DNA of 64,000 nt from positions 8,680,001 through 8,744,000 of the forward strand of contig NC_134031.1 of NCBI RefSeq assembly GCF_964204645.1, given 5' to 3'. Origin of the DNA: Tubulanus polymorphus (taxonomy: Eukaryota; Animalia; Nemertea). The position numbers were made by a program, and so were the translations under genes. The notes under the pieces are model-generated. The model made no database searches. It was not told the origin of the DNA and worked only from the letters and a program-made list of their open reading frames with translations. Below are positions 12,331-55,710 of this stretch, one piece after another. Position 1 is the stretch's first letter; each line of letters opens with the position of its first letter.

Positions 12331-13197
12331 AGCAGCCCGGGACAAGGATCAATTCAATTCATAATTCAGGGCGATTCTCCCTGTGTTGTACAGGACACTA
12401 CACTACATTTTCAGCTAAAATAACTACAAGGCATCCTTTAATTTCAATGCGTTTTGGCACATTGGTACTTAGGGAAGTTGTTTATCATCAGACAGCAAAC
12501 AGATTCTGATATCATACATACAAGAAAAAAATATAGCCATTCAAAAATAGTGTTGTACAGGACGGAGACAAACCAAGCATTTTCAGATGAAAAGTTTGAA
12601 TGAAAATTTCTGTTAAATTTGGATAGACATGAAGGCAATAAAGAAGTTTCCAGTTTCAAGGCGCCATTTTGAGCGGTACATTCTGTTCAAACGCAAAGAT
12701 AGGCTCTCAACTAGGTCACCTTAAAAAATCATTGAAAATCATTGAAACTTCATTCAATTCCATTCATATAGGCCCCTAAACATTATGGTGCCCAGTGACA
12801 CATTTCACAAGTATTTTCAGGATATGACTTTGGTAGGAAAAATTTCATATTTTTGATTGCGTAGAGAACTTCACTTCCTGAAATATAGGGTGTTCGCCAC
12901 TACTTGACACCTGCATTGGCTGTCGATGGCAAATTTCATTCTTCACAAATCTAGGGTACTTTCAGGAGAATTGCCCTTCATCGAATTAATAGTGCTTATT
13001 ATAATTGGAGATCTACATCTTATACATGTAACATAAATTATGTATTATCAAGTAGGCCTAGGCCTATGTGGTTAAATTCAGTTTCATAGTTGGTACCTAT
13101 ATGAACATAGACATATGTGCAATACGACGACGAGAGAAATCCCACAATGATTCAGTCTGAGATTAAAACTACTTGAATAGCAGAGAATTTATTCAGA

Positions 13198-13236
13198 GCA
13201 ACGTTTCGGCTAAACACTATTAGCCATCATCAGGCG
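13198..13236 (-). ncRNA. Minimal type I hammerhead ribozyme motif in a Penelope-like remnant (~13125-13245)
   Basis: Minus strand: cgc-CUGAUGA-U-GGCUAA(uagugu)UUAGCC-GAA-ACGU-U-gcu. Confidence 0.75.
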
Positions 13237-13517
13237 TACTAATGTAGCCTACATAAGAAAAAAATCTAGCAACTTATTCACTTTCAGGTCCAAATTTAAC
13301 TCTAGTGGTTTATGTATATCCTACAAAACAAGTTTGATTTTGATAAATTGTGCTGGAGTTAAATACTTTTTCAATACTGGTTTATTTTTCAGGCTGAATA
13401 CCCCTGTTTTCAGTGATTATTATTATAACTCCTTTAGGCTAATCATAATTGTTTCAAATATTGCATCAGGTGTCCTAAGTTGAATAAACATTTTCATGGA
13501 ATTTAAAATGCTTTATA

Positions 13518-34750: not shown

Positions 34751-36802
34751 TTTTTAGCCCACTTGGGACTTAAGCGTTCACTTTTCATCCGTCGTTCATC
34801 CATTCGTCCGTCCGTTGATGGAATCCAGTTATTTTGGGAAGTTTTGAAGACGCTTCAATGTAATGTCTTGATATTTAGGTTACACATGTATCTATACTTG
34901 ACACATCTTCAGCCCAAAACTGACCCTGTCAGAATCAAGATGGCCGACTGGCAGCCATTGTTGTTTGCCAAAATCAGCACTTTCTACACATTTTTTAACT
35001 TTTTGCGGGAAATTTTGAAGACGCTTTGATCAATTACCTTGATCTTTCGTAAATTTTTGAATCCCTCAAGGGCCCATCAACATAAGAAAAATTGGGTCGA
35101 TCAGACTCAAGATGGCGTCCTATACCCTTATTAGTGGCCAAAAATTTTGGCCCAAATTCTGAGTCCTGTAGTTTCCTAGTGGTTTGCCATTTATCATTGC
35201 AATTTGTGATGGGTATTCTTTGGAAAGGGATGTTCTATACCTGAGACATGTATTTTTGATCAGCTAAGTATGGCGCAATTGGCAGCAATCTTTGCGTCAT
35301 CAGTACTCATTCGTAGGTGGGAAACCCCTCAAATTCCAAAATCCATTTTTGAGGGTACAAAATCCCTAAATTCTATGTTTCAACTCTTCAAATTCTGAAA
35401 ATTGTGCCTCTCAGAAAATTGTGTATCATATATTTCTAAATGACCTTTCATCAAAGGTTCTTTCAATTTGCATCATGTGCTAGTGGGACTGTCACAGAGT
35501 GAATGCATTGTGTTGTTTGATAATCACAGGTGTTGCTTTATCTTAACTGTGTACACTCACACTAAATCGCCATTTTGTACTTCTTTATCTAGGTAGCCTG
35601 TTTGAATAGATTAGTTTTAACAATGGTCATTATTGGGCTAGGCCTTGTTATCATCCCTAAATGTCAAGACCTCTAAATGTACAGACTAACTTTCTTAATT
35701 ATTTTTAAGGCCAGATTTAAATTAATTGCAATGAATCAACTAGGCCTATTTAACCTGAAGTTTAGAAACAGTTATCATATTTCATTGCTGGATGTCCACG
35801 ACCAAACATATTTTTACAAAATGCTGAAGGGATCCTGTCAGTTTATGGATTTATGGCTGTCGGATGCTAATTTTTCAAGTTGGCTGCTCAAAAGACAAGC
35901 ATTCTGCGAAATGTTCAGTTTGTGACAGAAAGTTTTCTGTAGCTAATCATGGAAAGAAGGCTCTTCAATCTCATGCTGATGGAAAAAAGCATAAGGATCT
36001 CTTGAAAAATCTTGAAAAATCAAAAACAAATTCGCAGACCATTACTGGATTCTTTTTACCTCCAGCATCTCCTGCAGCATATCGTTCAGATTCTGCTGCA
36101 ATTTCATCACCTGTTGTGGAACTGTCAGGTGCTAAAAGATCATTACTTCAGGATTAATCTGTCTCAAGTTCTAGTGAACATGTTCTATTATTCAATGAAT
36201 CGCTCAACAAAGTTACCCAAGAAAAACAGCTGGATATGTGGGTTAGATATTGGAGTAACGGTATTGTAAATACAAGATATTATGGCTCGCATTTTATGGG
36301 TCATGGTGATTCTGAAAGACTGCTCGATGAATTTAAGATGTGTGCCGATAAACTGAATCTTAGGAACTTACTGCAGATTTCGATGGATGGGCCAAATGTG
36401 AATTTAAAGTTCGAAAGGGATATGGCGGCCGAGTGAGTAAGGGCTTATAAGATTGGTACCTAGGGATATTTTGTTACCATGATCGATTGCAAAGTTGTAG
36501 TTCATGACATGTTCTATGATTGTGGTGAGTTTCAAGGTCATTGGGTTTTGCATATGGTCACTCAGGGGCGTTGAATAGTAGAATAACTTAGTATTTCCTT
36601 ATTAAATTGGTAACGAAGCATATTTTGTTATCACAATCAATTACAAAATCGTAGCTGCTGACATATTCTATGATTATGGTGAGTTTCAAGGTCATTGGTT
36701 TTTGTATATGGTCACCAGGGGGCATTTAATATTGAAATTGTTAGATTGTTGAGCATTTGAAACCACTTCCCAAGTGGGCATGGTGTCCCTGGACCCCTAG
36801 TT
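34751..36802 (+). mobile_element. HINE family A element with ~1.1 kb of hAT transposase DNA inside
   Basis: 5' end ttttagcccacttgggact plus TCCG repeats; core to ~35325; satellite monomers resume at ~36440; 3' end cccaagtgggcatggtgtccctggacccctagtt. Confidence 0.75.
35800..36436 (+). pseudogene. Deleted hAT-superfamily transposase (zinc finger plus part of the DDE core)
   Basis: AKCSVCDRKFSVANHGKKALQSHADGKKH zinc finger, then LFNESLNKVTQEKQLDMWVRYW...FMGH...QISMDGPNVN. Confidence 0.75.
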
Positions 36803-37589
36803 TAATTTTTATTTAAAAATAGTTAAAATGTACAGGAAATGATTTTCAGAAGTTCTTACTGTTTGTCAAATACCATTCTAGTCGGCCTGTAGGTCTAGTT
36901 TGATTCCCTGCCAGATGTTGGATCATTCCTACGTACCTTCCCGTTTTTCCCAATTTTCGAGGGTACGTCAACTGTTCAACTATTTTTCTAAATAGCCTTG
37001 CCGAATGGAAAAAATTAGCAAGAGACTCAGCCTAGTTTAGCTGCGTGCCAGACCTTGAACCATTCCTAACTACCATTGCTTTTTCTTCCGTGGCTACAAA
37101 GCATTCTAGAATAAGCTTTAGTAGATAGCAAAAAAACGCCATTAGAATGGGTAGTAATGGTTCATTTACGTGAAAATCCTGAGTGCCATGAATGAAAAAT
37201 CTAAGAGTAAATGAAAATATAATTCTCCAAATCCATGACAAGAATCATCATCATCATCATCATGAACAAGATACAAATTACAAGAGGTATATTTGTTCGT
37301 TTCCCCCATTTGCTAACAGAATTACATAAATCGTGGACGAGTCTGAATACGGCGGTTCAACTCCAGAATAGGTCAAAATAGTTCCATCGTGCAGGGTTTT
37401 CTTAAATGAAGGGAGTGGTTCGGTTCCAAATTGCCGCCAGAAACCTGATCGTCGACCATTTCTCGGGTCGGCAATCGGCAATCAGAAACCTGACTAAATG
37501 TGGCGGTATAACGAAATTGCGATCGTGAGGATTGACACGCCTATTGACCGTACAATGAAAGATATATATCAGTTTATATAAGTTTGATG

Positions 37590-39200
37590 TTCCTGACTGT
37601 GCCCGTTTGTGTATGTGAAGAACCAAATGCGACGCTTGTAGCAATAGGACAAATACCACCAGTAAAAATACCACCGAAAAAAATGCCACCGGTTGAAATG
37701 AAGGTAGGAAAAATGCCACTGTGGCACACGTTCCCAAATGTTTTGATACTTTCTCAGTTTGTATCAAAAATATTGCCAATTTCTGGTCCTTGAGTCCTGA
37801 AAAATGATAAATTTACAGCGCAAAATCGTACAAACGTGTCAATTATACTTCTAAACACTTTATTTGCGGACCAGTTTATGAATTGAGCGTGGGCCATAGA
37901 GCGCTATATCCGCCTGTGATCTCGACTTTCAATTTATTACGTAAGCTATTCGTGAACAAAATGCGGCCGGCGCACAATAGAAACTTCGCTCTATGTATTC
38001 TTTCATTACCGCCGACAAAGAGGACCGATATTTCGCAAATTGGATTCGGGAGGTTTAAACCTCCCAAGGTCAAAAGACTAAAATTGTGACCTTCGTGGAG
38101 ATTATCTAAAAAGCCGATGGTAATCAAATTTAGCAGAACTTTTTACCCAAACGTTCAATGGTTTGAAAATCTTTCAATGGCATTCCTAAGTATTTGATGA
38201 AAGTTGAGAAATCATAAGATATTCATATAACCATGGACTCTAAAACCTAAATCGTTTAAGAGTCCCTGATATAAAAGAAACTTCGCATAACGAAGAAGCA
38301 AAAATTCGAATCTGATTCATCTGTTTGGAATTGATTCTTATGAAATGGAAACAAATGCGTGAGCACTACTCATTGATTCGTTCATTATTGTACAATATGT
38401 TTCATTTGTTGACCGTAAGACGTTGACATTATGTCAATTTCATTCAATTTACTTTGCGGCTTTACAACGGCTATTTCACAAGTTCTGCGTGATGAGATAA
38501 TTCTGATTAAAGTTATTGTATTAATTTCTACATGTATATACGTAATGATACTCTTTCTGAATAAAAGATGCACGTTATTCGAATCCCCACCATTGTTCTC
38601 TACAATGTACGTTAATCAAACTCACGATAAAACCAGAGCCAAAACCATGGACTCAAACATACAATTCTAATTTCCCCGTTAGTTCACTGATGCCGTCAGT
38701 TTCTATCGAATGCAAGGATTCTAGCCAATCAGAGAGGCGCATGTACACATCCATTGGCATACTAAGTTATAGTACAACTTAGACAATAATCAAGGCTCGA
38801 GCCAATGTCAGTAACTAGAATATGTTCTTTCATCAAATTTAAATAACTCAGCAGTAGTCAGTTAGTTGAGTTTGTTTGACTTGTTTTGTATTTCATCAAT
38901 CAATCTATTTCATTTTATTTTAAAGTACAAACTAAACGCTTGAATTGCTTATAACACAACCAGGTATGAATTAGAATAGATCGGCTTAATATTTCGAATG
39001 CAAATTTGGCGATTAAGCAATCGGAAATTCGAAGTGCTTGAGAAATTTTTCAATACGCCCATTACTCCGAATAGCGATTAGTTCATTGACACATGTGACC
39101 ATTGTTTTGTTACTTTCGATAGCGATTCGAATAAGCTATGCGACAGCTAACGACAGCACAATCGCAATATCAACAGAAGTTCATTTTATCCTACATGATG
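37590..39200. repeat. Left arm of a long diverged inverted repeat
   Basis: 37725-38400 aligns to the reverse complement of 45700-46380, and 39060-39140 to 45440-45530. The outer aaatgccac/aataccacc repeats mirror ~46900-46940. Confidence 0.75.
38232..38268. mobile_element. 37-bp P-like mini element or scar
   Basis: CATGGACTCTAAAAC...GTTTAAGAGTCCCTG; 7-bp flanks ATATAAC / ATATAAA. Confidence 0.7.
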
Positions 39201-39741
39201 AGGCTAAATTCAGTGAAATCGATCGTGTTCTGAAATATATATTTTCCTGGATACATTTTGTTTATTGTAGCTATTCTATGCGGTTCTATACATTAACCTG
39301 CTATAACATATTGACCGTTTTCAAGAACCCAAAAATCCTAATTTGTCCTAAACGATATTCCAACTATTATTTTGTTAATTATTCAACTATCATCACTAAC
39401 TGGGTAAGTTAGTTGAACTTACATAAAGATATATCATTAGGGACACTTCAATTTCACACCATTCAATATCATAAGGGAACAAAATTCTTTGAAACTTGGT
39501 TAATGGTAGTTCTTAACACTAGGTTTTGTTTCCGGGATTTACTAAATGTACCAATTCTAATAATTCACTCATTGAAGCTTCTATACATTAGAAGTGAAAG
39601 CTCGTGCGTCGAAATAAATAGTTAACCTTTAAAGTACTACTCGTCTCTTCATTTAAATTCAAATAATATAAGTCTTTATTGATTCTTTTTTGATGGAATA
39701 TGCATAACTTTTTCTGGGCAAATTTCTATATTCTGTCAAGT

Positions 39742-39788
39742 CATGGACTCTAAAACGATTTAGACATTAAAACGTTTTAGAGTCCATG
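39742..39788. mobile_element. 47-bp P-like mini element or scar
   Basis: Perfect 16-bp IR CATGGACTCTAAAACG; 7-bp flanks GTCAAGT / GTCAAGG. Confidence 0.75.
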
Positions 39789-40139
39789 GTCAAGGTATTT
39801 TGGCTATAACGAGTATAACTAACTCCCTGGGGCAACGATGTGGCTGATGAAATGATCTCTCCCATTGTAATCCCACCATTTAATTACTCATTGTATAACA
39901 ACTCTCACAATTAAGCCTCGGACTCTTAAACGAATTATGAGTGCATGCTTTAGTATAGGCTCTGATATAGAGGGTGTACGTTCAAAATCCCATAGATCAA
40001 AATCCCACAAGTCAAAATCCCATAGTCAATATCCCATTGTTCATAATCCCACATATTATGATCAAAATCCCATATATTTTTATTATATACTATGGGGTAT
40101 CTTATTTTTTACTATACAGTGCCGAATACTGTAGAAATA

Positions 40140-40318
40140 ACAAGAGAAATCCCACAATAAGTTCAGCCAAAACGAGAAACTTGAATAGAAGAGTTATATA
40201 TATTTGCGCAACGTTTCGGCTAAAGACTATTAGCCATCATCAGGCGTACTGAGTACAGGAGAATTGTGGGATTTCTCTTGTTATCTTCTTACACGGATAT
40301 TGTGTATCTTCTCGTCTC
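40140..40318 (-). mobile_element. Penelope-like mini-insertion with hammerhead and inverted tail
   Basis: 12-bp TSD ACTGTAGAAATA (40128-40139, 40319-40330); the segment acaagagaaatcccacaat is inverted internally as attgtgggatttctcttgt. Confidence 0.8.
40207..40246 (-). ncRNA. Minimal type I hammerhead ribozyme motif
   Basis: CGC-CUGAUGA-U-GGCUAA(uagucu)UUAGCC-GAA-ACGU-U-GCG: stem I CGC/GCG, palindromic stem III ACGU, GUU cleavage triplet. Confidence 0.8.
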
Positions 40319-40786
40319 ACTGTAGAAATATGTATATGTTAATAGAATATAACCTATATGCTGTATATAGGCTAATGAATGAATACAGATTGGTCTTTGA
40401 TCTAGAGGATTAGACTAATTATGATATGCTTTGATCAAAGGTGATTAAGTTGAGATTAATCAGTGTTTAGTTAACCATAGCTATAGACAGGAAAAACCAT
40501 AAGGAAAGGAAAACTAAAAGAAATGATAAGATAAGAATTACGTATACTCAATTTTCTACTATAAACTTCTAATAATATTCTATTATTCACAGTTTCATTC
40601 AGTACAATTCTGTCTCACATACATTAATCATTCTAAACACTTATTCTAAATCATTCTATATACAAACTTGGAAAAAACGATATATTATCACAAATCAGCA
40701 CATTTTCTTTTCAGTATAGCATCTATTATAAACTAATTTCAGACAGACAGGACGGATCTCGAGATTTAACTGGAAGATCTCACGAA

Positions 40787-41339
40787 TTAACACAAGAGGC
40801 GCATATTGTGTGAAATGCCTCTCAAAAACTGTGGAACACGTTTTTGTCCATTATCAAAGTCCTGACATAGATTTTTTAGCCGTTCTTGCAAGTCCACAAA
40901 TTTCTTACGAACACGTTTCGCTGGGCGTTGCCCAACGTTGTCAAGAGCAATCAATGCAGACACAGAAGCATTGTCCATTTGAAATGCATTTATGGTTCTC
41001 CAAATTGAGGGATGACGATGTCCCACCATGTTAAAATATTTACAATTCCAAGATTCACAGATATTATTGGTCCTTGCACTTCCGGTTAATGTAGCATGAT
41101 TCACATTCCACAACTCTAACGAATACAACGGATTTATCCTCTTCAAGCGCATTATTCCATTAGGCGCACGAACACTTTTATATCCACCATTGACATATGT
41201 AGCATCAAAATAACCTAGTAATTCCAATGCATCATCTGGCATCAATCTGCTTCGGTGTCGAATATTTCTTGACGTACATGTAACCATTGAGACATATCTT
41301 GAATCCACCTTTAGAAGTTTTAACTATTTCTGATGCCAT
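40787..41339 (-). pseudogene. MULE transposase remnant: FLYWCH-like start fused to the C-terminal catalytic-E region
   Basis: MASEIVKTSKGGFKICLNGYMYVK joins out of frame near 41243 to LLGYFDATYV...LWNV...RTNNICESWN...HPSIW. Confidence 0.85.
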
Positions 41340-43344
41340 CTTAACGTATTGATAGCTGTTAAGAGACTGATATAATTTGCTAAGTTTTGGCCCCTTTTTA
41401 TAGCAGTATAGCCATGAGTGATAAGTGTTCAAGTAATTAAAAAATCATAATTGCATCATGCTAATTAATCAATAACTTAATTATTGACACTGAACTGAAA
41501 TCTGTTCTTTAATTAATTAACTGACCTAAGTTTGCATTCAGATGTATAGATCAGTATACATAATGTTTATAAGATGCTTTAAAAACTAAATATCATGGAT
41601 TTGCAATTTGAAGTTACCATTGCTTGTAAAACAAACCCCAACATGTGTGCACCCTATTCATGTGGAACAAATTTCGGATAAATTGTGGGATTCATATAAT
41701 AATTAAGGAGATATAATGTGCCTTTCAAGAAAAAAAACGACCAACTTTTTCACTATATATAAAATGTGTCCTTTTTCAGAGGCGCCCTTTTCGAGAAATT
41801 AAGGACATGATTATCAGATTTTGTGTTAGATGTGCCCCTGAATAGCAATCTTGTCATACAAAATTGAGTGTTTAACATGCATTTTAACATGAGGTGACAT
41901 TCAGTCAGTAATACTAACAACTTAACAATTAGTCATCCTTTAATCTAATAATTTGTTTTGTTTGAAATTGGTCAAAGCAGTAACAGCCACTCAATTAATT
42001 ATTATTAATTATCACTAACTAATTAATTATTACACATGAAAGTCATGTTTGAAGTTGTCATGTTCAGCATGTGAACTGAAGTCAATATCAATAGTGTAAT
42101 TTCCTTTTGTGAAATTATATAATACATAAATTAACAACTATCCTTTAATCTAATACATAAATCATGATCCTTTGATCTAATATCCTTTTGTTTTAAATAG
42201 ATCAGAGCAGTAAATGATACAATAGATTTAAAAACGGCCAATCAAAGGACAGCATCTGAACTGAAGTCAATTCCCCCTAATCCCTTACCCTTGGTTTTCT
42301 GAACAATACCTACCTAACTTAACTTAAATTTCAGCTGTTAGTGCTTCAACATATGTTTGTGTCTAAGATATCATATCATACATATGATGATAAGATGGGA
42401 AATACAATTTGGTAATACTAATGTATGGGATTTTGATCTTTATCTGTGGGATTTTGAATTATGGGATTTTGATTATGGGTTTTTGACATGTGGGATTTTG
42501 TAACTGTGGGATTATGACAGGGATTCGATATAGAGCATATTGTCTTGATTTAGAACATGTATGTATAAACTCTAGGCTGCAAAGAAATACGTTTTCAGCG
42601 GCTCTAATCGAGTTAAATCTTTCGTGATAGATTAACACAGAGAGGCGGCACCCAATCGCTGCTTATTGACATTAGGCACAAGTCACTGTTTTGTTCATTA
42701 GTAAAACTAATATAGAATGAATAAGTGAGGAGGGAAAATGTATAAATTAAATTTATAAATGAATTTATAAGAATTTAGCATGCATCGGAGTGCACTTAAA
42801 TTGGATTATTACAAAATAACTCACTTCAAAATTTATGATATTGTTTCATTGATATTTATTACTTTAAAGCAATTCACTTTAAGAACTTTGGTCAACAATA
42901 AGTCTGACCTGCAAATCAAATCATCGGGAGACAAAATACTGTTTCAAAAAATTATATTGCTAATACATTCCTAATCTTAACCTCTCGCCATAAACCTACT
43001 GGATTTAGGGCCTGGGGCATTTTAGATGGTTGTAGGTAAAAATCCCCTAGGTAAAATCCTCACTTGGCGATTTTTCAAGAACATTTGAAAGCACGATATT
43101 TATTCAAACATATTCATCCACAATACAACTGCAATATATATTTAGCTGTGCATTGATCTCTTTTGTTGAAATAAATCTTTAAATAAATTCATAGAATAAA
43201 TGAAATAAATGAACTTTTTATTCATACTATCTTTTCATATTTTATTCATACTATCTTTTAATTCGAACTAAATAACTCTTTTTAACTTGTGGTATAGTAT
43301 GCTTATGATATGGATTCGATTTACGTATCAATATTTTCATGTTG

Positions 43345-43472
43345 ACGGGGGCCTGATGATGGCTAATAGCATTAGCCGAAACATTGCTCGTAGAACATTT
43401 GATTTTTAGCTAAATTCATTGTGGGATTTGTCTCGTTATTCGCCATACACGGATATTGTGTATTTTCTTCTC
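43345..43472 (+). mobile_element. 128-bp Penelope-like mini-retroposon starting at its hammerhead
   Basis: 12-bp TSD ATTTTCATGTTG (43333-43344, 43473-43484); the tail cattgtgggattt.tct.gttat...tacacggatattgtgtat.ttct is shared with 40263-40318. Confidence 0.82.
43349..43389 (+). ncRNA. Minimal type I hammerhead ribozyme motif
   Basis: GGGC-CUGAUGA-U-GGCUAAU(agc)AUUAGCC-GAA-ACAU-U-GCUC. Stem III palindrome is broken (ACGU to ACAU). Confidence 0.72.
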
Positions 43473-45439
43473 ATTTTCATGTTGGTTTGGACAACTTAAA
43501 TTTTGCGATTCTAATACCTTATTAACTTTAGATGACAGTAATACCTTCAATTTACATTTAAAATATGATCACTGCTGAAAGTGTAATAAGGAATATATAT
43601 TTACTCCAGTGACAATATTTTGATTCAAAGATTAAATTCAATCATCTAGTCCGAGTCTGTATGGTAAAACTTCTGGCTAACCAATAGCTAACCGAATACC
43701 GACAATAGAAGGTGGTCGCTTAAAAATTAGTTTATTTATGCAACAGGAATCTATCTTGATTTCAAGGGCACTTCAATTAATCGTTTCAATAGTGACCACT
43801 TCAAATTAGCCAGTAGTTTAAATGACCGAATTCAATCAACCGATTCGTATCCTAAGAATGAGAATTGTATCTAACCACAGTAGTTATTCTTCATCAAACG
43901 TTCGGTCATCATATTATACATCTATACATCATTACTATCATCTTCAGTTAATAGAAGTGCAATAAAATCTAGAATCTATGAGTTGAGTTTTTTTTAACAT
44001 AATAAATTGTGTTGATTTTATGTTAGTTAAATCAAATATTGGGAATATTTTACCGGGGGATTTTTACTTTGGGGATAATAAGCTAAATTATTTTATATCA
44101 TCGGTTTTCATTAAGAAAAAAAAACAACTTTTAATCTTAACTACACTTATATTTCTTTTGGAGCATTAAGATTCTTTCATTGAATTTAATATGTTATTTC
44201 GTACAATAGTTCATGACAGTGCGTCATTCACGCTAAAATGTACAAAACTTCTTTACAGAGTTCAAAATATAAACCAACAATCTCATCTCAAGCATGTACT
44301 ATCGCTGACGTTATGGGATAAAACCAAGTCTCGATTCTTGCCTAAAATGTGGGTACATTCATTCAAATCAGGACTAAAATACGCTTATATGAATATCTTG
44401 CATGATATCATTTTACATTACGGGTGTCTCATAGGCCTGGTTTTACTTGTACATTGTCATCAATTGATTAAACATCCCAACTAACTTCTGTATTTACTTA
44501 TGGCTTAATCACCGGTATTCAATAGCTAGTCGGTTATAGAAAGACTAACCCGATAAAATTCCATTAACCGTTCGTCCAGAGTCGAACACTCGCGCGTTAA
44601 TTCGCAACGAAAGAAAATGATTGCATGAAATCTACTTTTCGTATCAATCGGCGTCCAATCTCTTAAACCATCCTAAACACAGTAGTGTAGTAGTTTGTGT
44701 CTATTTGCTTTTGCTGATGTCATTTAACATAACAATGGAAATGTATTCGTTTATTTGGAAATTATATGAAGATATGGAGTAATCATGTGACAAATCAAAT
44801 TATTACTGCAAGGCAAAACATAGCGCACTTCAGATATATGATATGGCTTAAAGACTTTTCATATATTAACAGTCCAGTTTAACGTCTATTGATATGAACA
44901 GTCCAGTTTTGATATGACTGTCGCAACAGTTGGAATAAAACCTATGAAATCTAGGGGCATTTATCTCATGAAATTTAGATTTGAGATAATTGTATTGTAT
45001 TGTATTAGGATTAAACACTTCAGTGGCTGGTGATTATTTGTGATGAAGTAATCAGTGAGATGGACTGTTGATGTAGCCTTGATTGAGGCACTCGGGTCAG
45101 ATAATATTTTTACATAAAACAGTGCATTTGTTAAAGCAGAACACATGATTTTAAACTAAATATAAGTAGCTAAACCGTTAATTTTCATTCCTAACTTTTC
45201 ATCACTCCCGATTATCAAAAATAATTCAACAGTTTGATTAACGGATAGTTGCAGTTAACAACATTTCTATCTGATAGAGAAGGTATACAGGTATACAGAG
45301 GAACAAGAAAAGAACATCCAACTAGACACTGAAAAATCTTTATTCGGGTTTTTTACCAGGGGCCTTTACCTTGGGGTATATTTAACTAGGGGATTTTTAC
45401 TGAAAGGGGCCTTTACGGGGCGAGTTTTTACCCAATCAC

Positions 45440-47005
45440 ATCGATTATTGAATGACATGTTCGATAAATCATGACAAAAACTGGTATCACTGGTACAATT
45501 TGCTAATTTTCGCTATTCGGGTGGTTCTGTAGATTATTGGCTATACCGTTGGTAACTGACTAGCTATTTGTATCACTGATCGGACTGTGAAAATATAGCT
45601 TTGACAAAACCACAACGAGAAATGAATCAAATGCAATATTTTACTCGAAAACGAGCATAACCATGGAATCAGTAACGTTTTTTTACAGTCCATGGCTGAA
45701 ATGACGCTATTGAAAAAATCAATGAGAAATACTGCCTCCGATTTTTATGACGAAAATATTGGAATGAATTCCGAACAGAATCCAATCAGGTTGTTCTTAT
45801 TGGTATTGTGTATACATTTCATTTATTAGATATTTCAAGTAATTCGTGTAATTAGGAAAAACTCGATCCAATAATGGGTTTTTCCTTCGGTTTTACGTAA
45901 TTTACAACTTACCAAATATGGACTACATGGTTTGACATTAAAACCAGTGAGCATTATGGTATCAAGTTCAACCAAAATTGATAACGATCGGCCTTTCGTA
46001 GAATCCCCCTGAAGGTCACAATTTTAGTAAATTGACCTTGGAGGTTTAAACCTCCCGAATCCAATTAGCAAAATATCGGTCCTCTATGTCGGCGACAATA
46101 AAACTACCCTGCGCGTAACTTTCTATTGTGCGCCTGCTGCGTTTTGGGCACGAGTAGCTTACGTAATCTTAATTGAAAGTTGAGATCACAGACAGATATT
46201 GAGGTCTATGGCCCACACATAACATCATAAATTGGTCAGAAAATAAAGTGTTTTGTGGTATAGATGACACGTTTGTACGATTTTACTCTGTAAATTTATC
46301 ATTTTTCAGGACTTAAGGACCAAAAATCGGCAATATTTTTGATACAAACTGAGAAAGTATCAAAACATTTGAGAACGCGTTACCAATGATTTTTTCAATA
46401 GTTTAAAATCGAACAAATAATGATACCGTAATAAAATGCTAAAGTTTATTTTCAGACTTATCCAGATAATATACACATTCGAAATACAATTAGTACTCTA
46501 CTACTGATTGTGAATTTGATTTTAACTAAGAATAGGAGCAGAGTAAACTAGGGGATACTTATTTACAATTTAGAGTAAGTGCAACCTAGGGTTACAGCAT
46601 AAAATCAGACAAACTAAAGAAATTTGATGCACGGAAACTTAGAAGTAGTAGTTTTATTATATTAGGTTTAGTGTCACTAAACCTAAGACCCATAAACATA
46701 AGACCTAGCGGGTCTTAGGTCTTAGGTTTAGGGGGTCTTGGGTTTAGTGACACCCATTGCAATGCAGCCAAATACAATAGTTAGTTGGAAATTCAATAGA
46801 AAGAGATCATTGATAAAATGACTGATCAATAATTCAGTCAACTTAAATCTATGTATGTAAATAACTTTTTCCTATTTGTTCCTACTATACTAAAATTGGC
46901 ATTTCTCCTTTGGTGCAAAATTTGGTGGCTTTTTTTCGGAGGGACGAAACAACAATGAGGTTTTTACCTCCTGATTCATACGCAATCGAGGTTCGTACTG
47001 ATCCA
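45440..47005. repeat. Right arm of the long diverged inverted repeat
   Basis: Reverse-complement homology to 37590-39200; interrupted at ~46390-46890. Confidence 0.75.
46671..46752. repeat. Small palindromic MITE-like element
   Basis: gtgtcactaaacctaagaccc ... gggtcttgggtttagtgacac. Confidence 0.75.
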
Positions 47006-47344: not shown

Positions 47345-48307
47345 ATGAACGCTTCAATGCAGAAAGCGGGAGAAACGCTCCTTTTCCCTATTGGACACAA
47401 ACGAACTGAAGTTAATCCAACCTTGTTGTCAAACTATCCATTCTATCGTTGGATATACTACGTGATTGGTGTCATTTGTCTCACTCTGGGTGTGGTAGGA
47501 AACCTCATGATACTAGTCGTGATGACTCGACCCAATTTACGTCGACTATCCTACAGTCGATTTTTTATAGCTTTGGCGTTATCAGACTCAACGTTTTTGT
47601 GTACGTCTCTGGTTGAATTAGCGAACTCCATTTGTTTCCACAGAAACGGCTCAATCTGCCTGCGTGCCAAATCATGGTCTATTTGTGTGTGTCGGGAGGT
47701 TTTCCTGTATGGCTCGGTTACCTTTGGACCGTGTATTCTCATTCTTGTGTCTCTCGAACGACTGTGTATTATACGATTTCCATTCTCCGGTCCTAGTTTC
47801 TGGACACCTACGCGTACAACCATATCCGTTTGTGTTTGTCTTATTTGTATTCTCAGTTTGTTTACCAGTCTTTTTGTCAGTAGCGTATCATTCAGTCGAA
47901 AATACGGATGTACCATCGAGGAAATGGCTCTTTTGGGTTCCACTTATATCGGTTTAGTTTTAGCCATTTACCTCCCTACCGTCGTACTTTCATTGTTGAC
48001 AATTCTTATCATAACGAGCTTAAAACGAAGCAGTAGAGACCTTGAAGAAAATAAGTCGAAACAAGGTTCGAACCAAGTTACGCTAATGGTTTTGACCGTC
48101 TGTTTATTCTTCATTGTTACAACCGCGCCAAATAGCGTCACATTGACGTTGTATTTGACACCAGGCTGGGCAAATTTGGCCGCGTTCCCTCATCAGGTTT
48201 CCTCCCTGATACAGGCGTTCAACTATTCGATGAATTTCTATTTGTACATTTTCTCCGGGAGGGAGATTCGGAAGAACGTCATAGCAATTTGTTCATGTAA
48301 ATTGTGA
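47345..48307 (+). CDS. Intronless rhodopsin-family (class A) GPCR, FMRFamide-receptor-like / Srw-type group
   Basis: 320 aa with seven hydrophobic segments: GN (TM1), LALSD (TM2), Cys near TM3 and in ECL2, SLER (DRY variant), TM5 Pro, F.....P (TM6), NYSMNFYLY (NPxxY variant), helix 8. Confidence 0.92.
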   Translation: MNASMQKAGETLLFPIGHKRTEVNPTLLSNYPFYRWIYYVIGVICLTLGVVGNLMILVVMTRPNLRRLSYSRFFIALALSDSTFLCTSLVELANSICFHRNGSICLRAKSWSICVCREVFLYGSVTFGPCILILVSLERLCIIRFPFSGPSFWTPTRTTISVCVCLICILSLFTSLFVSSVSFSRKYGCTIEEMALLGSTYIGLVLAIYLPTVVLSLLTILIITSLKRSSRDLEENKSKQGSNQVTLMVLTVCLFFIVTTAPNSVTLTLYLTPGWANLAAFPHQVSSLIQAFNYSMNFYLYIFSGREIRKNVIAICSCKL

Positions 48308-50864
48308 TCATCATGTTCACTCTTTGATTATCTATGATATTCAGTTAACTTGACTTATAAATCTCCAAAAAACACACAAGTGCTCACACAAAATTGATTT
48401 ACGTTCGTCAATTTCTAACGCACCGCATAAATGTAACGGTAGATGCCGAGATTACACGGATTCGCGTGCGTGACTGGGTTTCATTATTATTTTCCATCCA
48501 CGTTTCGTGTTTAGATATAATTATATATATATATTAGAGCTAACAAATAAATGATGATTATTTAAAAAATCAGAAATGATAAGTACCTTGATCACGAGAT
48601 TGACTGTTCAAATTCGCGCTATTTGCACATTTTGCAAAAAGGCTTTTGAATGCGTATATATTTGAATATGTATTTCTCGTGATTAAGCTTATTAAAATTG
48701 CTCAACCTGTGATTTACACGAATCAATCATATCGATGTGTCATTCAAGAGTTAGCGATGAAGAAACGAACATTGTCTGTGCCCATTGACGGTATGCAGTA
48801 TTCGGAATTAACAAGAAAATTTAGTAAAGAAATGACGGCGCCTTCGGAAAAAAATGATAGTGTGTAAGGAATGCATGATTGGATGGGTGCGATGAGTGGA
48901 AAATCTTTTACTTCAAGAATACGTATTCGTATTTATAGAGCCGTACCCGAAAAAGTAGTTCCATATGTGTTTTTCATCACAATGTGTGTACTATTGTTTT
49001 GTACAGGTTACACTGTTTATATTGCATTCACTTTTCGAATTTTCACTTGTCGGTTGGGAACTAGCTCGATTTTCCGCGCGAATAATACGCGTCGCAGATT
49101 CCGTTGATGACCTGCGACTTCCAGCTCCAGGTCCTCGATAAATAAGACGACAAGGCTCAAATTCCGATGAAACCGTGGTTTATTTCAATTAAAGCTAACA
49201 AAATCTTGGCGTTTTCAAATATCGGGTAACGTTCACTGTCTCCAGTACGTGACAAGAATGAACAAAGAAGGTGTAACATATGCATTGAAATTATTAATGA
49301 TATATGATAGTAATTCATATCTGGGACCAACTACGCTATATTGTCTATCAGCCAGGATATTTAAGGCATGTCGAAGACTAAAAGACATTTGACAATGATT
49401 TCATTCAGTGAGCGACATTTTAATCAACAAGAAAATTAATTTTTAGGCCAGCCGTAGGCTGAGCCTATTACTATACAAATGGAGCGAATTTAAATGACAT
49501 GGTTTCCACACAAAAGGCTCTTTTGCTTGCCAAGTGAGGGCATATTCGAACAAATCACGTATTTAAGCGTAATCCATTCTCGGAATCGTAGCGAGCAGAA
49601 TTTTGAAATAGGGTCTCATAAAAATGTTTTCTGCATTTTTCACGAAAGTTAAATCGGGAAAATTTCAATTTTTATCAGCCAATCAGGAAGTTGTGTCTTC
49701 CCTGTGATTGGTTTATCTGAAAATATCAGCAGCTGTTCACGTGAATTATCGCGATTTCATTACTGGCGCTTTTGCGCATGACGTCATGTATCAACAAGCG
49801 ACAATACTTCCGCGTTCGCTACGTTTTCGCTGATTGGCCCATTTACTGGGAAATTCCACAGAAGCCTAATGTGGTTTGTTACAAGCGCTGTGATTGGCCC
49901 GACCCGATTCTGGCATGGCTTTAGCTTAGTGGGTTCGAATCCCTTGACGGGTGAAGATGATGGATCCTATCAATATCTATTAAAACAAATAAGTTTCCCG
50001 GTTGGGCAGCCGCGGATATCTACCGGAAGTGTTCCGGTTCGATATTTCGAGGTTTCTTTGAATTTTGGAGTGATATTGAAATCCGGTAAATACCAGCGGT
50101 AGATTGTGAAAACCCATTGCATGATATTTGTATTACTTAATCAACGAAAAGCGTCGGGGCCGCGCCTGGAGTTTTCGTGATTCAAGTAGCGCAATAGCCT
50201 ACTTCTTCGTGTTCGTCCACCTCAATTTTCACTCCGCCGATCTCTGACACGGCTCTGTCCCCGTCGGCGCTGTGATTGCACTTTCGTACCACCAAACTTT
50301 TTTATTTCTATATCAGGGAGGTCTGGAGAATAAAAAAGTCAAAATTTGGATATCACATAGGCCTGATTTCATCGAATAAGTCGACCATGGTCGTTACGTT
50401 TCCGTACTTATTACCACCTAAAACCGTCTGAACAATTTTGTCACAACCAACATTTCGTTTACAGAAATCAGGTGTTCACGTGAATCCGCGGTATCGTCTA
50501 CTGTTTTACTTCCGGGTTTTATTTTAAGATTTAAAATTGTATTTCAAGATCGATTTCTATGAAATCTTTAGTTGATTTGGTGTTTGGGAGGAATTTTTAT
50601 TTGCTCTACAGAAAATTCATCCTTGACAATTGCGCAAGGTTCGCGAAAAAAAGGTTTTACCAAATCGGGTGTATGACCTTGATATGCTAATTAGCCATGT
50701 GCCCGAATTGAAAATTCAATCAAATTTTATTCTGCCAAAAAAATGTTAAATACAATTCGCTTTCCGAGAGTTAATGGTATGCTGCATGGAACAAAGTTGT
50801 TTTGAGATGGGTCTTGAAGCTATTGAGGTCGAGAGATAACCATCTAGATAGTTCGTGAGAGTTC

Positions 50865-51540
50865 CAAAGTTTTGAAGACGCTTCAAGGTAATGTCTTGAT
50901 ATTTGTTTTATACGTGTATCTACCCTAGACACATCTTCAGGCCAAAAACTGGCCCTGTCAGATTCAAGATGGCCGACTGGCAGCCATTGTTGTTCGCCAA
51001 AATCAGCACTTTTTACACATTTTTGAAGTTTTCGAGGGAAATTTTGAAGACACTTTTATCAATAACCTTGATCATTCGTATATATTATATCCCCCGAGGG
51101 CCCATCGGCATGAGAAAAATTGAGTCGATCGGACTCAAGATGGCCGTACTGTGACCTTTTTTGTTCCCAAAAATGTCAATTTTGGCCTGAATTCTGAGTA
51201 CTGTAGCTTTCTAATGGTGCGCCATGTTTCATTGCAATTTGTAATGGGTATTCTTTGGAAAGGGATCTTTTATATCCGAGAGGGTATTTTTGACCAGGCA
51301 ATTATGACGCACTTGGCAGCCATCTTGGGGTCATCAGTACTCATTCGTAGGTGGAAAAAAAGTTTTTCCACATCATAATTGATACTTAAGCATATTTTGC
51401 TACTATAATCAATTGGAAAGTTGTAGCTCATGACATGTTCTATGATCGAGGTGAGTTTCAAGCTCATTGGTTTTTTTTATGGCCACCAGGGGGCGTTGAA
51501 CAATACAATAACTTAGTATTTCTATATTACATTCGTTCCT
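50865..51540 (+). mobile_element. HINE family A fragment (core plus one monomer)
   Basis: ttttgaagacgcttcaa...caagatggccgactggcagccattgttgttcgcc...ccaccagggggcgttgaa. Confidence 0.75.
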
Positions 51541-52462
51541 GCTGTCTGTGTTAACACACGATTTTACTATGTAAATGATATTGAGCAGGGAGTGTATATT
51601 GATAAATATAACCCACAGATTACATCATTTATAAAAAGCAAATCTGACAGGCTGGCCATTGTGCCCCTTGGGGCTCTTGTAGTAAATTACTTGATGCCTG
51701 CGAAAAAATTTAGAATTTTTGGGATAAGCTAATGTTGAATTGCAAATTTGAAATCGAAGTTTTAAGAAATATGGGGAATTATGAGATTTGGCGATTGGGT
51801 AAGGTGATACGCGGTCTTCTTCGATTGTAGTAGTGGTTTAATTTCTGTATTGAAAATTGTCAATAATTGATTTTGTAACTTCATTCTTATGCCTCTAAGC
51901 TGGTAAGCAACTTCATTGCCTCCATGGTCGAGGAAAGAGCTCGTCTGATGTCTGCTTCATCATGACTTTGGAGCATTTCGTGTGGCCTAGCCAGCCGACG
52001 CGGCCGGTCCCCGGCCAAGGAAAAAAGGATCAATAAAGAATTGAATTGTCACCTAATACACATGCCATCAGAGGAGGCGGAGCCGTATATGACAGCTATG
52101 CTATTGTAAATTGCGTGAAACCTGCATACCCCTTAATATCGAACATTTGAATATTGAAATTATATGTTTGCACATTTTTATATTGACCGCTTGTAGCCGC
52201 CGATGAAATTAACGCCGGCCCTTCACAGATCGTAGATAGCTTCGTCATTCCACCAGCATCCCCATGTCAGGGTCTTACTTTTATATCAGATTTCCAAATC
52301 CCGTATATATCCACCATTTTGACCGAATAATCCGCTTTACTTATCATTTTGATGTATGCCTGCCGCTTCTGATATAATCGTACATCCATTACTATTACAA
52401 TATGTCTGCTGATGATATTCAATGCAATATAACATTTCGACATTCAAATGGAGCTCATTATA

Positions 52463-54402: not shown

Positions 54403-55101
54403 TATAATCACGGAAGATATTCTACATCTTTATCAATAATATTTTGCCAAATAGCTTGTATGTGTACACATAGACCTGTGACGTTTTGCACATCGATTTA
54501 CGGTTGTCGTTTGTAAAATGATGCTGAATGTTTAGGTTTCATAATGGTAACGTTTTATAAGGCGTAAAAAATGAAAATTTTGCATGACGGGTCAATATTT
54601 CCAAAAATGTATGTTTATTTTTTACTTTGGTACATCGCCCATGGTCAAAGTAGTTTACCTTGGAAAAAGATCTTTTTAATTCTTGAGTAAAGTAAGTAAG
54701 TAAAGTTTTTGTAGTCAAAAAAAGGCAAAAAATATACATTTGTTTACGGTCCATGTCCGAAATTTGTTAGGGTTCAGGTAGGAAGGGAAGCTATTTTGAA
54801 AAAATAATTTTCAAAATATGAAAACAATTTAGATTAAAGGCAAAAAATGATACTTTGTTTCTCATTCCCCGGCCGGGTCAGATGAATTAACGGTAAAAAT
54901 CGTAAAAATAAAATGGTGCCGGCCGGGCCTAGACTTAATACCTTCTTCGTTTTATGATGAAAATAAAAACCGGCTCGTCGGGTCAATACGTACAATTAGT
55001 ATATGGTAACGATTTTCAGAATAGTGTACATATCCTGTGCCTTATTTTTTTTTATTTTATAAATATTCAGTGGAAACGGTTTTTTTGTCAATAAAAAAAA
55101 A

Positions 55102-55710
55102 ACTAGGGGTCCAGGGACACCATGCCCACTTGGGAAGTGGTTTCAAATGCTCAACAATCTAACAATTTCCATATTCAATGCCCCCTGGTGACCATATACA
55201 AAAACCAATGACCTTGAAACCCACCACAATCATAGAACATGTCAGCAGCTACGATTTTGTAATCGATTGTGATAACAAAATATACCTAGTTACCAATTTA
55301 ATATGGAAATATTAAGGTTCTTTGCTATTCAACGCCCTCTGGTGACCATATGCAAAACCCAATGACCTTGACACTCGCCACAATCATAGAAAATGTCATG
55401 AACTACAACTTTGCAATTGATCATGGTAACAAAATATGCCTAGGTACCGATCTAATAAGGAAATACTAAATTATTCTACTATTCAACGCCCCCTGGTGAC
55501 CATATCGAATAACAAATGTCCTTTAAACTCACCTCAATCATAGACGATGTCATGAGCTACAACTTTGCAATTGATTGTGGTAACAAAATAGCATAAGTAC
55601 AAATATAATATAGAAATACTGAGTTATTGTATTATTCAACGCCCCCTGGTGGCCATATATAAAAACCAATGGCCTTGAAACTCACCATATCCACGTTATG
55701 GGCTACAACC
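55102..55710 (-). mobile_element. HINE family A 3' end with four ~154-bp monomers
   Basis: actaggggtccagggacaccatgcccacttggg; monomers at 55176, 55330, 55484 and 55637. Confidence 0.82.

Follow-up and report, generated by a model that had tools for sequence, protein, structure and literature searches.

Short hammerhead-bearing copies of a Penelope-like element in Tubulanus polymorphus: a probable single retroposition carried as cargo by a DNA transposon

Introduction

The short interspersed element (SINE)-like hammerhead repeats of schistosomes are short ribozyme units comparable to the one that we describe here from the nemertean Tubulanus polymorphus. The window analysed is a stretch of 64,000 nucleotides (assembly GCF_964204645.1, contig NC_134031.1, positions 8,680,001 to 8,744,000 of the forward strand), and plain coordinates below are positions in it. 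At 43345-43472 it holds a 128-bp insert with a minimal type I hammerhead motif. Hammerheads of this sort are known from Penelope-like elements (PLEs), where single dispersed motifs, as well as opposite-strand pairs, were read as truncated PLEs (Cervera & de la Pena 2014, PMC4209133). An ACGU palindrome is required to build helix III of the dimeric ribozyme (PMC4209133). The minimal PLE hammerheads cleave poorly in vitro, and a protein may be needed (PMC4209133, PMC11167929).

The sequences described here are of this known kind. Like the minimal hammerheads of PMC4209133, they combine a long helix II, with a bulged nucleotide at its 5' end, with a short helix I, a palindromic mini helix III and a location in the PLE terminal repeat; their copies, too, are mostly single, some forming inverted pairs 100-700 bp apart or closer. 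They also resemble the non-LTR (long terminal repeat) retrozymes of metazoans, short non-coding units with a PLE-type type I hammerhead that are related to PLE terminal repeats (bioRxiv 10.64898/2026.07.22.740005). Retrozymes, however, are arranged in tandem and are thought to give rise to circular RNAs, whereas the 128-bp insert stands alone as a monomer, its palindrome has decayed and nothing marks it as a separate lineage. Two things are added to the known picture. Unlike the copies of PMC4209133, this copy was multiplied by a DNA transposon, within which its amplification was passive, and the 5' boundary of its family is discrete, next to a TATA box and a TCAGT motif, rather than set by arbitrary truncation. 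We conclude that the insert is probably a dead-on-arrival mini-copy of a canonical PLE that is active in this genome, derived from a leader cDNA, which landed once in a DNA transposon and was then passively amplified.

Results

The insert and its hammerhead motif

Two perfect copies of the 12-bp sequence ATTTTCATGTTG, read on the plus strand at 43333-43344 and 43473-43484, enclose exactly 128 bp, as stated in a preliminary description of the locus that was made from the sequence alone. A 12/12 match at a fixed register has a chance of about 1e-7 in this AT-rich DNA, and we read the two copies as a target-site duplication (TSD). The insert, also on the plus strand, opens with ACGGGGGC, and the hammerhead core begins 8 nt in. 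Sequence reading, pattern search and a minimum free energy (MFE) fold place the whole motif at 43349-43389 (plus strand). It consists of a CUGAUGA core at 43353-43359, a bulged U at 43360, a 7-bp stem II (GGCUAAU/AUUAGCC, 43361-67 and 43371-77) closed by the loop AGC, and GAAA at 43378-81, after which comes CAUU. In stem I, GGGC (43349-52) pairs with GCUC (43386-89), one of the pairs being G.U. Both the position of the core and the pairable stem I thus agree with what had been reported. The cleavage site is predicted after U43385.

With a loose hammerhead pattern, three cores were found in the window (13203-33 and 40213-43 on the minus strand, 43353-82 on the plus strand), against 0.03 expected from shuffles. 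The MFE fold of the region forms stems I and II. Co-folding of monomer and dimer RNA gave no discrimination between the two, as the catalytic core is not represented in MFE structures. The Rfam hammerhead models gave no match at the gathering score over the whole window, and none at E<=10 over 39800-43800; this null result is probably expected and uninformative, because the motif lacks the helix III of typical hammerheads.

All copies of the 128-bp variant share a single site within a DNA transposon

When the 128 bp were used as a query, 40 places in the genome were scored, at 92-100% identity. In all 30 copies fetched the flanks were identical, and the 12-bp duplication was present in most. 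Homology around the insert covers about 6.3 kb, an element that is bounded by terminal inverted repeats (TIRs) of about 430 bp and in which no open reading frame (ORF) longer than 86 aa was found. Six full copies of this host are each bordered by a different 4-bp duplication (GTAT, ATTT, ATTG, AAAT, ATAT and GATT), which identifies the host as a non-autonomous DNA transposon of the cut-and-paste type. Its copy in the window, at 37726-46382, carries the insert as cargo; the host copies are about 94-98% identical to it.

A pattern spanning the left junction of the insert had 48 matches in the genome. A pattern internal to the 128-bp variant had 34, and all the listed ones that were compared fall at host copies. 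The approximately 48 copies of the variant all occupy a single position in the host transposon; this implies a single retroposition, followed by passive spread through transposition of the host. The retroposition predates the expansion of the host family. Copy number had been considered as a sign of SINE activity, and was rejected as such once the flanks proved identical.

Two further observations concern the host. Other copies (L031:1872-2174) hold about 300 bp that are missing from the window copy at 39332-39336, and the window copy has no matching 4-bp TSD at its ends.

An autonomous PLE carries the same hammerhead and tail

The PLE origin put forward in the preliminary description is supported by an autonomous element with reverse transcriptase (RT) and GIY-YIG domains that shares both the hammerhead and the tail. 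It is a unit of 2856 bp at L067:6187-9042; positions in it are given below with the prefix U, U1 being L067:6187, and we refer to it as the master. Its ORF (L067:6190-8580, 796 aa, with the ATG at U4 and the end at U2394) matches the Pfam families RVT_1 (8.8e-12) and GIY-YIG (1.4e-5), and the Atlas clusters nearest to it contain arthropod proteins that combine HTH_animal, RVT_1 and GIY-YIG. It is a canonical EN+ PLE, with a C-terminal GIY-YIG. The locus is a perfect inverted structure, each arm of which holds a partial unit and then a full 2856-bp unit. At U2715, 142 nt before the 3' end of the unit, starts CCUGAUGA, the same hammerhead as in the insert. The motif of the master reads GAAACGUU, with a predicted cut after U2749 followed by GCGC, the 3' strand of stem I, and the unit terminates in CTTCTCGTCTC at U2856.

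By BLAST and by alignment to the PLE unit, the insert corresponds to U~2708-2856 with an internal deletion of about 21 nt. Its hammerhead part is 92% identical to the master and its tail about 84%. It differs from the master by a shorter stem II loop, by the deletion, which falls in the spacer, and by variants of an older subfamily. The 3' 55 nt (43418-43472) align at about 84% both with the PLE 3' end and with 40263-40318, so that the tail reported earlier as common to these two places of the window is real. The last part, 43440-43472 on the plus strand, is equivalent to the optional 30-40-nt tail extension of PLEs (U2823-2856), since copies of the family end at either U~2822 or U2856.

The helix III palindrome differs between the two. 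At 43381-84 the insert has ACAU where the master has ACGU, and the same replacement was found in all of the approximately 30 sister copies aligned; ACGU is retained in the master and in the copies at 40213 and 13203. The insert is moreover a lone monomer, the nearest other hammerhead lying 3.1 kb off on the opposite strand. With its palindrome broken and no tandem partner, the hammerhead of the 128-bp copy is most likely a fossil, and an intact ribozyme is not supported.

The hammerhead core with stem II has 223 exact matches in the 268-Mb genome, and none in the control. These often form close opposite-strand pairs or lie 2856 bp apart; approximately 34-48 of them are the host-borne 128-bp variant. 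The TSDs that we read at other, independent insertions of the PLE family measure 9-15 bp. Pairs consist of head-to-head arms, one ending at U2856 and its partner at U~2822, a difference of 34 nt; the full-length inverted locus of the master and the young insertion at 40139-40318 (below) follow this arrangement too. The 128-bp copy has the tail-bearing end, without an inverted partner. A tail that is usually present at one end only, beside an inverted 5'-truncated copy, is typical of PLEs (Craig et al., PMC8557442). Genome-wide, the start of the ORF is kept in just 5 copies, at about 4 loci. In three of these that were examined, the upstream partial units measure 455, 1120 and 2225 nt, and never 150.

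At G000:C6, same-strand hammerhead cores at 407082, 409915 and 412792 lie 2833 and 2877 bp apart, and the pattern of the TATA region is missing upstream of them. They may belong to a different PLE subfamily or to a tandem segment.

The 5' ends of the PLE family are clustered

Breakpoints were sampled from 30 loci, the first to be matched with the core pattern, every arm being mapped to the unit; 23 of these loci are independent. Thirteen of the 23 hold only arms that start at U2703-2716, with a mode at T2707, and the other 10 reach scattered points, from U1217 to U2621. Counted by arms, 17 of the 27 hammerhead-bearing ones in the sample start at U2703-2716.

Genome-wide figures rest on counts of 28-nt patterns with <=2 mismatches. 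Matches numbered 5 for the ORF start (U4-31), 86 for the TATA region (U2671-98), 358 for the hammerhead (U2716-43; 223 with the exact-core pattern) and 425 for the tail (U2829-56). About 81 5' ends are thus spread over 2640 nt (U31-2671), as against at least about 95-140 within 17 nt (U2699-2715). At least half of the hammerhead-bearing copies start in the narrow cluster, a conservative bound taken from the exact matches. Two copies in the window, at 43345 (U~2708) and 13240 (U2709), are both inside it. The 5' ends of the family are strongly clustered and non-random. The preliminary description had named randomly scattered ends as the mark of ordinary truncation; the ends instead cluster within about 14 nt immediately before the hammerhead.

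A TATA box, TATAAATA, is present at U2677-84, approximately 30 bp upstream of the cluster. The cluster itself sits in CTCAGT at U2706-11, of which TCAGT is initiator-like.

Other PLE mini-copies and features of the window

The window copy of the host contains a private 2.55-kb TIR element at 39973-42526, which is flanked by a 9-bp TSD, GATATAGAG, and bears TGGGATTTTGA-like repeats in inverted subterminal arrays. It is absent from the other host copies, where 39963 is joined to 42527. Its 173-aa ORF had no Pfam match, and it is possibly a Mutator-like non-autonomous element. Inside it, at 40139-40318, is a second PLE mini-insertion, young and independent, so that three elements are nested: the mini-insertion in the 2.55-kb element, and the latter in the 6.3-kb transposon. 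A minus arm with the hammerhead, from 40264 to ~40139 (U~2696-2822), stands there head-to-head with a 56-bp plus arm at 40263-40318 (U2801-2856). The two together are 98.5-100% identical to the master and are bordered by a TSD of 9-11 bp, ACTGTAGAA(AT), at 40128-38 and 40319-29. A third mini-copy, which is old, lies on the minus strand at 13128-13240. Running from U2709 to U~2819, it keeps the ACGU intact and lacks the tail extension.

Just outside the transposon nest, at 47345-48307, is an intronless ORF of 320 aa that matches rhodopsin-family seven-transmembrane (7TM) receptors (7tm_1 3e-13, Srw-type chemoreceptor 3.6e-10). A repeat of about 2.2 kb at 49440-51680 occurs at dozens of places in the genome with 98-100% identity, and its 3' part is also found as tandem pieces of about 150-300 bp; this suggests an active and very young element. 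Tandem repeats of 154 bp at 36444-36819 and 55084-55690 make up inverted arms with 92% complementarity over 376 nt. These arms are 18 kb apart and enclose the whole transposon nest together with the receptor ORF.

Discussion

The clustered ends can be given a common origin in the transcription and reverse transcription of the PLE. In the mechanism that we propose, U2707-2709 would be the transcription start of the PLE by RNA polymerase II (Pol II), which would put the hammerhead first in the leader of the mRNA. A Pol II start is suggested by the TATA box about 30 bp upstream and by the initiator-like TCAGT at the cluster. The PLE RT would start internally, at the junction of leader and ORF, at U2822 or U2856, and would run off the 5' end of the RNA, leaving a leader cDNA of about 115-150 nt. 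Such a cDNA might insert alone, or as a head-to-head pair after snap-back at a UCAG/CUGA microhomology. A start of RT at the mRNA junction and a run to the cap would yield precisely the unit of approximately 115-150 nt that is seen.

Two independent pairs, at L042:1424-1679 and L059:1435-1677, share a palindromic junction, CCATCATCAG-TACGC-CTGATGATGG, and in each pair its private variants are present in both arms. The shared junction and the variants suggest snap-back self-priming of a cDNA that would have ended at U2707, at the 5' end of the RNA. In the anole PLE, RT starts internally near the junction of pseudo-LTR (pLTR) and ORF, two adjacent start sites explain the 30-40-nt tail, and a promoter in the pLTR is likely (Frangieh et al. 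2024, PMC11167929). There, RT starts 111-118 nt inside the ORF, whereas the end of insertion here is 3 nt upstream of the ATG and the RT start is deduced from genomic ends only. Other signatures of PLE insertion are common to both (PMC8557442, PMC11167929): arms ending at U2856 or U~2822, head-to-head arms, TSDs of variable length, and inverted partial tandems such as that of the master locus. It may be, and here we lean slightly to the side of doubt, that a discrete leader cDNA, often doubled by snap-back, rather than random truncation, accounts for the main PLE product in this genome.

Several points weigh against the leader-cDNA origin and the single landing. The insert opens with 7 nt (ACGGGGG) that differ from those of the master (CAGTACG), which makes its precise 5' register uncertain, and some arms begin upstream of the proposed start, for example at U~2696 in the copy at 40264. 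The pyrimidine-preceded CAG at U2708-10 could be a 3' splice site instead; in the Penelope of D. virilis, helix I marks the end of an intron and the promoter has no TATA box (PMC4209133, PMC2377424). The count of 358 hammerhead matches, made with <=2 mismatches, may include 69-bp hammerhead satellites, and it is the bound of at least 50% that we rely on; among the first 100 of the exact matches, a spacing of 69 bp was not seen. Lastly, no empty site was found: the joined host flanks, with <=3 mismatches, had 0 matches in the genome, and the joint that skips the insert was absent from the contigs of three DNA runs.

This missing empty site speaks for a different view of the locus, in which the 12-bp repeat belongs to the host's own sequence and is not a TSD, the PLE-like piece having come through gene conversion or recombination. 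Yet the canonical 5' and 3' ends of the PLE family lie directly against the two repeats, the length of the repeats fits the 9-15 bp of the family TSDs and their match is far beyond chance; we hold this view to be extremely improbable. Alternatively, target-primed reverse transcription of a PLE could have ended early at random, which would leave an extremely 5'-truncated copy whose start 8 nt before the hammerhead is a coincidence. PLEs are notoriously 5'-truncated (PMC8557442), and sample arms do start at scattered places (U2621, 2726, 2783, 2794 and 2801). Against this stands the pile-up at U2703-2716, to which 17 of 27 hammerhead-bearing arms and both window copies, at 43345 and 13240, belong; random truncation is thus unlikely. 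The insert might also be a solo pLTR, left when a full-length PLE with 150-bp terminal repeats collapsed by recombination, and a repeat-bounded unit flanked by a TSD is indeed how a solo repeat is expected to look. Copies that keep the ORF start are nevertheless few (5, at about 4 loci), and the three examined have upstream partial units of 455-2225 nt and never of 150; several minis do not differ from the master at all (100% identity) and are hence very young, and head-to-head mini pairs with common private variants better fit a single insertion event. A collapse of this kind appears very unlikely.

The preliminary description had left the choice between a truncated PLE and a ribozyme SINE. 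The derivation from a PLE stood, while the self-propagating SINE did not, all 128-bp variants being at one host site, and neither did a lineage of its own. The SINE idea amounts to a SINE- or retrozyme-like ribozyme retroposon that is non-autonomous, yields a self-cleaving transcript and, as a separate lineage, is repeatedly moved in trans by the PLE enzyme. The family does present a discrete and abundant unit with many independent TSD-flanked insertions, and non-LTR retrozymes have been proposed to be non-autonomous pLTR derivatives (bioRxiv 10.64898/2026.07.22.740005). Yet the 128-bp variant has no independent copies and is a monomer with a broken ACGU, and the minis show no lineage-specific changes. 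Young minis are 100% identical to the end of the master and older ones share variants with older long copies; an independent mini lineage is not indicated, because the short copies match the autonomous element of their age without diagnostic changes. Transcription of the short unit by itself is countered by the position of the TATA box (U2677-84) outside it, although an internal promoter may be present. We regard such a retroposon as distinctly unlikely, and keep the dead-on-arrival PLE mini-copy, amplified as cargo, as the probable nature of the insert.

For genome annotation, a tiny ribozyme unit flanked by a TSD can mislead by its high copy number, which here reflects one retroposition carried as cargo. 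For the biology of PLEs, which are poorly understood, the sharp 5' boundary beside a TATA box and a TCAGT motif, the 34-nt, two-ended tail and the palindromic junctions make up a testable footprint of where RT starts and finishes, and this footprint may also show how hammerhead-only repeats originate. If the leader-cDNA proposal is true, it would provide genomic evidence in vivo for an internal initiation so far shown only in vitro, and would give a simple origin to hammerhead-only repeats, as seeds of retrozymes.

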